A stretch of DNA of 64,000 nucleotides, taken from Piromyces finnis finn. Its lineage: Eukaryota; Fungi; Neocallimastigomycota. Position numbers and translations under genes: made by a program. Positions within the stretch are counted from its first letter, which is position 1, and each line of letters starts with the position of its first letter. Of this stretch, positions 29,390-34,444 are shown one piece after another. Location of the stretch: assembly GCA_002104945.1 (NCBI GenBank), contig MCFH01000029.1:372001-436000 (forward strand), written 5' to 3'. The notes under the pieces are model-generated. The model was not told where the DNA came from, did no database searches, and saw nothing but the letters and a program-made list of their open reading frames with translations.

Positions 29390-31024
29390 ATGGGCAGAAA
29401 AGGAAGTATGAATTTACAAGTTATAACTGATAGCTTTGTAAAAGATCAAAGTCGAAGAAGAAATTGTCAGATATTGAGTGCCAGAGTTCCAACAACACCT
29501 ATTAAATCTCAACAAAGAAAATTATCATCACCAGAAATTGAATTAACTTCATCACCAAATAAAAAACCAGAAGTTAAAGCTTTATCTATTCAGACTGCAC
29601 CAAAATCTGCTATCCCAAAAGGCTCTGTTCCAAGATCAGGTTTTCCAATGTCTGCTGTTCCAAAATCTGCATTCCCAAGTTTAAGAATATCAACTTTAGC
29701 AACTTCAAGTAATAAAACTTCAGGACCAAAAACACCAGTAAGTGCATCAGGTAAAAAAAGTCAAGGATTAACTTTAAAAACACCAACTTCAACCATTCCA
29801 GAAATCGATGCACCAGATACCCCTGTTAATATAATTTATGCAAATGCTTTCTTTGATAATAAAACTCGTGAAGATGAAGAAACAGAAGCTATAAGCAAGA
29901 AAGTATTAAAACAACAAAGAAAAGAAAACATTCGTAATATGCGTCGTGAACGCATGAAACAACCAAAAGATATTAGAGTTGCATTAATTCTTGGTCGTTT
30001 ATATGATGCTTCAAATTATGAACTAGGACCTTTATCTTACTGGTCTGATCCAGAGATTGAAAATATTGAAGAACTAAAGTCTAAGGAAATTAAACAAACT
30101 GAAGAAACAGAAAATAAACCGAAGAAGATGATTCAATTGAATCCAGATGGAGATATAGAAATTGAAGATGAAAAGGAAAAGGACCAGTCAAATAAAATTA
30201 ATCATGATAAAACTAATAATGTAAATGCTCACCCAGCTTGGGTGCCAGAAGATGCTGGTTGTAGTAATGTTGCATGTCAAAAAACAGCTACTAGAATTAA
30301 TGGTAAACTAGTTAAAAAAAATAGAAAACCATATGTAGCTATTGCTTCTTTCTATGCTAAATTATATGATCCAATTATGATGAAGAAAAGAGAAGAAGAA
30401 GAAGAACTACAATTAATTGAAAAACAAAGACAGAATTCAATTATTACTGAATTAAAACCAATGGGAAAAAGTTTTAATTCAAGAAATCAAAATGGTAATA
30501 ATTCTAAATATAATAATAATAGTTTTTATAACAACTATAATTATAGAAACCAAGGAGATCAAAACAATTATCAAAGCAGACAAAACTTTAACAACCAAAC
30601 TTTTAGTAATAATACCTTTAGAAGTAAAAAATACGAAAATAACGATGAATCCAATAAAATAAACTTTAAAGATAATAGAAATCAACAACAACCAAATACT
30701 AGAAGTTTCAACAGTACCAAAAAAGGTTCAATGCAAACTAATAACTATATGAATAATAATTATAATCCAACATATAGTTATGGTTATGTATATCAATACC
30801 CAGTATATCAATACTACGATCCAAATTTAGTACCAAATTATGAATATACCAACTATGGAACAGACTATAATCAAAATTATAGTAACAATTATTATAATAA
30901 ATCTTATAAATATAAACCTAGAATGAATTATAATAATAATACCAATCAATATACATTTAATAATAAAAATAATGATGCTAATTCTTTTAAAAAATATGAA
31001 AAAAAAGTTAATATTAAATCTTAA
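29390..31024 (+). CDS. Intronless 544-aa orphan with an S/P/T/K-rich N-terminus and an N/Y/Q-rich prion-like C-terminus
   Basis: Long open ORF with elevated GC and coding-like codon usage; no family recognised. Confidence 0.8.
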   Translation: MGRKGSMNLQVITDSFVKDQSRRRNCQILSARVPTTPIKSQQRKLSSPEIELTSSPNKKPEVKALSIQTAPKSAIPKGSVPRSGFPMSAVPKSAFPSLRISTLATSSNKTSGPKTPVSASGKKSQGLTLKTPTSTIPEIDAPDTPVNIIYANAFFDNKTREDEETEAISKKVLKQQRKENIRNMRRERMKQPKDIRVALILGRLYDASNYELGPLSYWSDPEIENIEELKSKEIKQTEETENKPKKMIQLNPDGDIEIEDEKEKDQSNKINHDKTNNVNAHPAWVPEDAGCSNVACQKTATRINGKLVKKNRKPYVAIASFYAKLYDPIMMKKREEEEELQLIEKQRQNSIITELKPMGKSFNSRNQNGNNSKYNNNSFYNNYNYRNQGDQNNYQSRQNFNNQTFSNNTFRSKKYENNDESNKINFKDNRNQQQPNTRSFNSTKKGSMQTNNYMNNNYNPTYSYGYVYQYPVYQYYDPNLVPNYEYTNYGTDYNQNYSNNYYNKSYKYKPRMNYNNNTNQYTFNNKNNDANSFKKYEKKVNIKS

Positions 31025-31476
31025 TAATGAAAAATATTAAATTAGCTATAATACATATATGGAATATTAAATTGCTATTAAATATATACTATAAAAAATA
31101 TATTTATATAATATAAATATAATATTGTAATATTATAAAAATTATACCAAATTAAACAATACATATATAATAAATATATGAAATTATTATGTATATTGTT
31201 ATTTTTTTAATATTTTTAATAAAAAGTATTTAAAAATCCAATTGATATTTATTTTTAATATATATAAATTTATAATTATGTAATTGTTGTTGAATATTAA
31301 ATTTTTGTAAAAAAATTTATAATTTTATAATTGTTGAAGATTAAATTTTGTAAAAAAATTTTAAGTGTAATTCATATATGTTATATATCATGATTATAAA
31401 AAGAATAATTAAAAATATTAATAAATAAATATATTTATTTTCAAAATTATAGTATCTATTACTATTTTTATACAGT

Positions 31477-33416
31477 ATGGGTTATTCTACCAGGTATAAA
31501 TACGACATTATATAAATATACAAATACTTTTAATTTTTAAAAATATATTTACTATATTTCATTTTTCATCCATTATTCTATTCATGTATATATTTATAAA
31601 ATAATGGTATAAATTCAAAAAAAAAAAAAAAAGAGAGAAAAAACCAGTTTCATATACTTACGAATATAATGTTAGCGATGATGATGATGTATATGAATAT
31701 AAAGTAAACCCAAGTAAAGAAAAAAAAAAAAAAAAAAAGGACTATACAATAAATGAAAGTAATGACTCCGATTTCAATTCTAGTAATTCTGATTCACAGT
31801 ATTGGAAAAAATCAAAAAAGTAATTTCAAATTAAATTTGAATATAAATAATAACAATAACAATTGATTATACTATATTTATTTTGATAAGAAATAAAATA
31901 TCTTTCAGTAACAATAAAAATTATATTCTCAATTAATTTAGTGTCTAATGATATATGTAATTTTGAATTATTTTAAATATATGTCAAAGTAGTCCTTTAA
32001 AAAGAAAAAGTTTACAGGAAAAAAAGGAAGATGCTCAATTAAGACAGGTATTAAAATTATCAATGCTTGAGCATGAGAATTATCAAAATGACAATGTTGA
32101 AATTATAGTAAATGAAAAATCATATGAATTTGATACAAATAATAGCAAAAACGAAGAAGAAAATGTATTAACAGATGAACTTGTTAATGATGGTTAGAAA
32201 TATAATAGTATTTAACTTATAATTCTTTTTAAGTTAAAAAAATAATTTTTTTTCCTTTTTAATTTATAGATTTAGTAAATGAATTAAGTAAGACAGATGT
32301 ATCTGACATTTCATCATTAACTTTAGAAAGTGATATATCTTCTCATTCAAACAAAGAAAAAGAAATATATCAATTAGATGATAATAGTTCTGATTTTGGT
32401 AAGGAAATAATAGTTTTATTTTAATTGAACTTATTAAGTTTTTTTTCATGGAAGGTAATATACATTTTTAATATTTATATCATTTATTTTTTTTTTTATC
32501 TCTTTTCATTAGATGATTTTAAACCTTCTAAGAAGTCAAAAAATAAGAGAGAAGAAAATGTTACAAATGAATCAAAATCAATAAAAAGAAAAAGAAAAGA
32601 TATTGAAGAAGAAGAAAATATAATTATTTCAGAAGATGAAAATAATTATGATAATGAAACCGAAACGAGAGTAAGAGAACATACCCCAGTATTATCAAAG
32701 AGCTCAGATAATGATAATTATGATGGTGATGATGATAATGATGATGATGATGTATATAAGGAGGAGGATGAAAATTATATCAGTGATAGAAATGATGATA
32801 CAGAAGATGAATATGATGACTATAGCGATTCGCGGAAAAAAAAGTCAAAAAAGAAAAAAACTACAACTAAAATAATCCCAAAGTCTTCTTCAAAATCAAA
32901 TTCAAAGATAAAATCATCAACGAAGAAAGATTCAAAATCAAAAACATCAAAAATAGAAACGCTCAAAACAAAAGAAATTGTTTCAAAAAAAGCTGTAACA
33001 AAAAAATCAATAAATTCACCCATTATAATAAAATCACCAAAACAAAAGATAGGAATTTCTCGATCATCTATAAAATTACCGAATAGTTCAACATCAAAAG
33101 TAAGTGATATTAAATATTATATAAAATTATTGATATTATATATTAATTGTTTAATTATTTATTTACTCATAAAATAATAAATATTTAAATATATTATAAT
33201 ATATTATAGTTAAAAAGTATCAATACACCAATAAGTATGTATTTTATTGATATACTAAAATATTTGAACGATTACTAACTATACTATTATTATAAATAAT
33301 AAAATTATATATTATAATTGAAAGATTCATCAAATATGAGCAGACCACCAAGGATTGGTCTTTCAAGAAAGGTTCATATTAAGCCGCTTCATTCATATCT
33401 TCATCATCCAAAATAA
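31477..33416 (+). CDS. RAD51AP1-like protein, multi-exon
   Basis: Spliced product: MGYSTR|EKKPVSYTYEYNVSDDDD ... EDAQLRQVLKLSMLE (UIM-like) ... acidic then Lys/Ser-rich region ... RPPRIGLSRKVHIKPLHSYLHHPK*. All introns are canonical and in frame. Confidence 0.7.
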
Positions 33417-33506
33417 ATCATACATATATATATATTTTTTAATCATCTTAAAAAACTAAAAAATATTAGAATTAATTAGATATTTCATTAATATATTTAG
33501 AATCAT

Positions 33507-33519
33507 TAATAATAATAAC

Positions 33520-33557
<38 letters not shown>

Positions 33558-33573
33558 TAACAATAACAATAAC

Positions 33574-33623
<50 letters not shown>

Positions 33624-33633
33624 TAACAATAAC

Positions 33634-33669
<36 letters not shown>
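33507..33669 (+). repeat. (AAT)n/(AAC AAT)n compound microsatellite
   Basis: Directly visible; two similar halves. Confidence 0.95.
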
Positions 33670-33670
<1 letters not shown>

Positions 33671-34444
33671 TCATAAATATATAAAATAATACCCATATAA
33701 AATTATTAATGATGTTACACTAAAATACTATTTATTTATTTATTTATTTGTATTTAAAATGAAGTAAAATAAAATAAAATAAAAATAAAAAATTATATTA
33801 TTATCACTAAAAACTATATATTGAATAATATTTATGCATTTTTATATATATTTATTATTATAAGTAATATATAAATATATATTTCTATTTTCTAAGTTAT
33901 ATTATTTAATATTATAAAATTATTGTAATCATTATACTTTGTTTTATATTTTATTAAAATAACGAAACAATTTATCATTATACTATTCATAGATGAATTT
34001 CCATATAAAAAATCAATGCTACATTGTATATATTTAAATTATATTATTAAATATATAGTTTTATGATTTTTTGTTTAAAAATAATATAAAACATTTTTAT
34101 TATCTATAATAATCTATAGGCAAAGATCATGTTATCTTTTCAACATCTAAACTATTTTATATGTAATTTTTAATATTCATGACTTTGTAACATTTCAATA
34201 ATTAAATTATTTACTAAACTTAATTAATTTTAATAAAAAAATCAAAATCAAAATATATAGAAAAATAAAATGATTGTTTTTTGTTCCTTAATAATGGAGG
34301 AAAAGTTTATTTATTAATAATTATTTTTTATAATAAATTTATAAGGCTATTTCTTTTGATTCCTTTTAACTTTTTTTTAGTCTATTATTAAAATTTTTAC
34401 AATAAAATATTATTTTTTAATATATATATAAATATTGATAAAAA

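Follow-up and report, generated by a model that had tools for sequence, protein, structure and literature searches.

A conserved gene with seven exons in an anaerobic gut fungus probably encodes a divergent RAD51AP1-family protein

The window, i.e., the whole stretch of 64,000 nucleotides of Piromyces finnis finn that was analysed, is extremely AT-rich (12-32% GC in 2-kb steps). On its forward strand, positions 31477-33416 hold a gene of seven exons with 411 codons plus the stop. It begins with an ATG at 31477 and ends with a TAA at 33414-33416, and all of its introns are of the GT-AG type. The exons and the features they carry are as follows (positions are those of the window).

31477-31493, + strand: exon 1, with the start codon and MGYST; it ends in phase 2 (AG of a split codon)
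31634-31819, + strand: exon 2, with the N-terminal motif (R)EKKPVSYTYEYNVSDDDD, a run of lysines from an A-run in the DNA, and SDSQYWKKSK
31993-32192, + strand: exon 3, with the UIM-like helix (core at 32027-32071)
32270-32398, + strand: exon 4, Ser/Asp-rich, with the conserved block LSKTDVSD.SS
32513-33099, + strand: exon 5, with a KRKRK patch, the REHTPVL block, and an acidic block followed by a Lys/Ser-rich basic block
33210-33234, + strand: exon 6, a micro-exon of 25 nt encoding LKSINTPI
33325-33416, + strand: exon 7, which ends the gene and carries the RAD51_interact motif (matched by Pfam at 33339-33401) and the stop codon

The summed exon length is 1236 nt, which is divisible by three and corresponds to 412 codons including the stop. 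The six introns are 77-173 nt long, each of them bounded by GT and AG, and their GC content is 0.07-0.16 as compared with 0.20-0.41 in the exons. Codons split by introns yield R, N, D, D, and N across the junctions. The R and both N are the same residues in the two gut-fungal relatives described below, and the local alignments are compatible with the two D codons. At the acceptor of exon 3 (AAGTAG, 31988-31992), two AGs stand in tandem 3 nt apart, and either of them keeps the frame. The KSKNPLK junction of the relatives favours the downstream AG, which lets exon 3 start at 31993 without an extra Ser. A direct splice from exon 5 to exon 7 through an alternative donor at 33104 was rejected, as the micro-exon peptide is present in both relatives. 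On the minus strand at the locus, no ORF of more than 67 aa competes with the gene.

Some features of the surrounding sequence can be added. The micro-exon at 33210-33234 sits between two AT-rich introns. In exon 2, a run of about 20 A (31719-31740) lies within the coding sequence, where it encodes the lysine stretch and is likely a slippage-prone homopolymer. About 100 nt past the stop codon, a long AAT/AAC microsatellite (33505-33670) gives rise to minus-strand ORFs of poly-Leu and poly-Ile, which are spurious. Upstream, at 29390-31024 of the plus strand, there is a single-exon ORF of 544 aa with a C-terminal half rich in Asn, Gln, and Tyr.

The splice model is backed by relatives from other gut fungi. 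A search with the exon-5 ORF led to P0001, a gene model of 390 aa from the anaerobic gut fungus Pecoramyces ruminantium, which is the closest protein. A metagenome scan gave L006 (contig Ga0307464_105547, 1704 nt), which holds an uninterrupted ORF of 431 codons from the ATG at 76 to the stop at 1369. Both sequences are colinear with the window exons and contain the peptides of the micro-exon and of the terminal exon. All junctions of the model fall within continuous coding sequence of P0001 and L006. The residues at the junctions are identical in the relatives at TR-V/E, KSKN-PLK, and LKSINTPI-N-SS (hyphens mark the junctions), and the same holds for MGYSTR, encoded by exon 1 and the split codon after it. 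In addition, an 81-aa fragment from gut-fungal/rumen-type metagenome contigs (P0002) matches exon 4.

L006 is intron-free at all six positions and is therefore an assembled transcript or else a copy in the genome without introns, possibly a retroposed one. An A-run stands about 55 nt past its stop codon, but the contig then continues with more AT-rich sequence. The 3' flank of L006 also carries an ATA/AAAT repeat. Whichever of the two L006 is, the lineage encodes a message with this exon order, micro-exon and terminal exon included. The sequence-only reading had assigned the terminal exon to this gene, and the assignment holds, as the exon is carried both by the L006 ORF and by the Pecoramyces gene model.

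Identity to P0001 and L006 is about 71% in exon 2, about 65% in exon 3, 48-61% in exon 4, 55-58% in exon 5, 100% in exon 6 (8/8 residues), and 86-93% in exon 7. Apart from the eight-residue micro-exon, the terminal exon is the most constrained part of the protein (exons 2-5: 48-71%). The locus is a genuine and conserved gene of seven exons, which belongs to an anaerobic gut fungus (Neocallimastigomycota).

From the letters of the DNA, three motifs reminiscent of human RAD51AP1 had been proposed for this gene, and a three-frame translation of 31200-33700 confirmed their order and coordinates. They are REKKPVSY..SDDDD at 31632-31691 in exon 2, the UIM-like core EDAQLRQVLKLSMLE at 32027-32071 in exon 3, and the C-terminal motif RIGLSRKVHIKPLH at 33351-33392 in exon 7. 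The last of these had been likened to the RAD51-binding motif, with the Pfam model RAD51_interact (PF15696) named as the check. Against this profile, the 29-aa terminal exon scores 31.1 bits (31.3 in a second scan) with an E value of 2.6e-7, which is above the curated gathering cut-off of 25 bits. The alignment covers only model positions 19-39 of 39, and the critical residues are kept. The piece of L006 equivalent to exon 7 reaches 31.0 bits. A six-frame scan of the fungus's own genome (56,455,805 bases in 232 contigs; 56.5 Mb) with PF15696 returned a single match, which is exon 7 (29.7 bits, E 5.7e-5).

For these profile scans, the window exons were used singly, and full-length comparisons were made via P0001 and the L006 ORF. 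At full length, both relatives remain under the PF15696 cut-off (P0001 19.5 bits, L006 22.6 bits). P0001 has no precomputed Pfam domain because the score falls in the full-length, compositionally biased context. The terminal motif exon itself is not of low complexity. Judging from the E values of the exon and of the genome scan, the C-terminal match exceeds what chance would give.

The residues that matter for RAD51 binding are known from the human protein. The substitutions R316A, L319Q, L328A, and H329A weaken the interaction of human RAD51AP1 with RAD51 in the two-hybrid system (Kovalenko et al.; PMC1636435). In the long isoform, these residues are numbered R333, L336, L345, and H346. All four are kept in the fungal motif with a spacing identical to that of the human protein. 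In the fungal sequence R-I-G-L-S-R-K-V-H-I-K-P-L-H, the residues R, G, L, S, and R are retained, and L-H follows six residues on. A preprint of 2025 describes cryoEM of RAD51 filaments together with the last 29 residues of RAD51AP1 (10.1101/2025.05.24.655746). There, Site-M (332-LRLGLSR-338) lies in a RAD51 pocket formed by F92, R95, I100, and T119, with R333 pairing with D50, and L345 and H346 of Site-C lie in a RAD51 groove at Q145 and D184 (10.1101/2025.05.24.655746). The contact residues R333, L336, L345, and H346 are kept in the fungus, and L334 is replaced by Ile. In human RAD51AP1 as well as in RAD51AP2, the last exon is short and holds the RAD51 site (PMC1636435).

The two upstream motifs are less distinct. 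The N-terminal motif, basic and then acidic, is conserved in three gut-fungal taxa, and exon 2 matched no Pfam family. We take the pattern KKPV.Y...SDDDD to resemble a feature common to RAD51AP1 and NUCKS1, which is not known from RAD51AP2. Likewise, the N-terminal and UIM-like strings of human RAD51AP1 presumably resemble the fungal motifs and follow each other in the same N-to-C order.

For the exon-3 segment, which had been described as UIM-like, the position and the predicted helix agree with this description, but the Pfam score does not reach that of a UIM. With the Pfam UIM model (PF02809), exon 3 scores 14.6 bits (E 0.03) and L006 11.7 bits, both under the cut-off of 21 bits, and the fungal match carries a Val at a position that is normally Ala in UIMs. 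In the AlphaFold2 model of P0001, the only confident helix comprises residues 69-99 (pLDDT 74-88) and spans this segment. Hence, the segment is UIM-like only.

An acidic-then-basic middle had likewise been noted and is present in exon 5. The acidic block at about 32635-32814 has a net charge of -21 over 60 residues, and the Lys/Ser-rich basic block directly after it (32815-33099) has a net charge of +24 over 95 residues. AlphaFold2, run on P0001 with a two-sequence alignment, gave a mean pLDDT of 47.8, with values below 50 in 273 of the 390 residues. RAD51AP1 is also reported to be largely disordered (10.1101/2025.05.24.655746).

At the end of exon 5, all three gut fungi have a conserved block of the pattern K[IV]GIS[KR]SS.KLP (KIGISRSSIKLP at 33046-33081). 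From its residues, it looks like a degenerate second copy of Site-M, for which any function would be speculative. The idea that the block is a second copy, or the first half, of the Pfam motif was rejected, since it gave no match at E values up to 10. WVPP, which is Site-N of human RAD51AP1 and also binds DMC1 (10.1101/2025.05.24.655746), is absent, and no W/F-x-P-P occurs in the window exons or in either relative. The sole Trp in the window exons, in P0001, and in L006 is the one within SQYWKKSK. The absence of WVPP weakens strict orthology, not membership in the motif family, because WVPP is a feature of the vertebrate protein and not of the Pfam family.

Relatives beyond the gut fungi were sought by several routes. 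With full-length P0001, a feature search of the ESM Atlas placed chordate RAD51AP1 clusters as the top three named matches with a score of 0.88; as this score is below 0.9 and only five of the ten best named matches agree, the result is a lead only by the calibration of the tool. The proteins of these clusters are 297-347 aa long, have 178-186 of 256 features in common with P0001, and carry PF15696 in 83-91% of cases. When only the last 71 residues were compared with the ESM Atlas, no usable match came up. With phmmer, P0001 found only itself and the 81-aa gut-fungus fragment among 1.84 billion representatives. Word-indexed protein searches returned only the Pecoramyces protein and no animal or other fungal sequences. 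PDB sequence searches with the terminal exon, P0001, and a two-sequence profile gave nothing similar. As phmmer finds only gut-fungal relatives, the link to the animal proteins is made by one significant short motif together with the architecture.

The genome also encodes the recombinases with which such a protein could act. Its own RAD51 gene is located at G000:C156:1476943-1478327 and a DMC1-like gene at G000:C158:227144-228139; both consist of many small exons. When the fungal RAD51 was aligned to the human protein, F92, R95, I100, T119, and Q145 (five of the seven named contacts were compared) were found unchanged, which is consistent with docking but no proof of it, as such residues are widely conserved and discriminate little.

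Taken together, the protein is probably a divergent fungal member of the RAD51AP1 family, with a length of about 411 aa, a largely disordered chain, and a nuclear location. This reading is supported by the order in which the motifs occur, by a middle part that turns from acidic to basic, by the disorder, and by the RAD51 site on a short last exon. The main rival is that the motif alone is shared, as it is in RAD51AP2, which has just the C-terminal motif in common with RAD51AP1. An unrelated disordered fungal protein would then have gained RAD51_interact by convergence or exon shuffling, and it might bind RAD51 without being an ortholog of RAD51AP1. Such an origin would agree with the match to PF15696 over its C-terminal half alone and with the lack of any detected full-length similarity to a non-fungal protein. 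However, the size of about 400 aa, the order of the motifs, the acidic-then-basic middle, and the disorder fit RAD51AP1 and not the 1159-aa RAD51AP2, and RAD51AP1 clusters rank first in the full-length feature search. Moreover, the N-terminal KKPV.Y...SDDDD presumably resembles a feature of RAD51AP1 and NUCKS1 that is not known from RAD51AP2. We consider a shared motif without common descent of the proteins unlikely.

The resemblance might also be fortuitous, the gene encoding a nuclear protein of low complexity that is specific to the gut-fungal lineage and has no link to RAD51. A protein rich in Lys, Asp, Ser, and Asn in a genome of about 20% GC, with short motifs and full-length Pfam scores below the cut-off, would leave room for this. 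We nevertheless regard it as very improbable, as the sole match in the genome-wide six-frame scan (E 5.7e-5) falls exactly at the C-terminus of the gene, the four residues defined by mutation are all in place at the correct distances, and the motif exon is not of low complexity and exceeds all exons but the micro-exon in identity (86-93%). Equally hard to credit is a chromatin protein of the NUCKS1 type, which would share an ancestor with NUCKS1 and RAD51AP1 and act mainly on chromatin or RAD54, not directly on RAD51. NUCKS1 and RAD51AP1 are indeed paralogs (28% identity), and the fungal protein has acidic and basic blocks, as both of them typically do; but no NUCKS1 homolog has a RAD51-interacting C-terminus, which the fungal protein has in strongly conserved form.

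On the preferred reading as a RAD51AP1-family member, we infer that the protein binds RAD51 and DNA and acts in recombination. The extreme C-terminus would dock on RAD51 in the nucleoprotein filament, where the fungal L-H (Site-C in the human protein) would be placed in the shallow RAD51 groove near D184 and Q145. Through its Lys/Ser-rich basic block, the protein would bind to duplex DNA and thereby aid the formation of the synaptic complex and of the D-loop. The single UIM-like helix may bind ubiquitin or another partner.

A wider evolutionary scenario is conceivable, although we would rather bet against it in its full form. In this scenario, RAD51AP1 would be an ancient RAD51 cofactor of opisthokonts that was lost in the Dikarya, including the model yeasts, and gut fungi would have kept the animal-type set of RAD51, DMC1, and RAD51AP1. 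The second Site-M-like element K[IV]GIS[KR]SS.KLP would replace the WVPP of Site-N and would bridge two RAD51 protomers in a different manner.

The sequence-only reading had noted that RAD51AP1 is usually described as an animal, mainly vertebrate, factor. This is an accurate account of the literature, as papers up to 2025 still call it vertebrate-specific (PMC12535699). One genome paper mentions RAD51AP1 in an echinoderm. Our literature search found no report of a fungal or plant RAD51AP1 homolog, nor any mention of the Pfam or InterPro accession of the motif. Domain databases may already list PF15696 proteins from non-vertebrates and even from some non-animals. If the fungal protein is a true member of the family, the origin of this RAD51 cofactor would move back to at least the common ancestor of animals and fungi, and a loss would be implied in the yeasts on which the textbook picture of recombination was built. 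Proteins of this kind escape automated annotation, as their full-length scores fall below the cut-off and the Pecoramyces protein is without a precomputed domain. Because WVPP is lacking, the fungal protein also offers a minimal natural comparison for Site-M and Site-C.

Among known systems, the yeast Rad51 factors Swi5-Sfr1 and the N-terminus of Rad54 use disordered segments which bind Rad51 and stabilize its filaments (10.1101/2025.05.24.655746), and residues 96-111 of human RAD54 show a weak likeness to the RAD51AP1 motif (PMC1636435). Swi5-Sfr1 and Rad54 differ from the fungal protein in having no RAD51_interact match and another architecture, and the fungal gene is without helicase or Swi5-binding parts. 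NUCKS1, a paralog of RAD51AP1, is a disordered nuclear protein with acidic and basic regions like the fungal protein, but it is without the RAD51-interacting C-terminus which the latter has. RAD51AP2 carries its C-terminal RAD51-binding motif on a short terminal exon, as does the fungal gene. However, RAD51AP2 is a meiosis-specific protein of 1159 aa which is unrelated to RAD51AP1 outside the motif, whereas the fungal protein has about 411 aa and a RAD51AP1-like organization. Vertebrate RAD51AP1 (PIR51), the accessory factor of RAD51 and DMC1, differs from the fungal protein in its WVPP Site-N, which the fungus lacks; only half of the Pfam model matches, phmmer detects no similarity, and the fungal protein has an upstream degenerate K-I-G-I-S-R copy. 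In size and disorder, the two proteins are alike. Both have an acidic block followed by a Lys-rich block, and at the C-terminus they have in common the residues R, L, L, and H, their spacing, and the short last exon.
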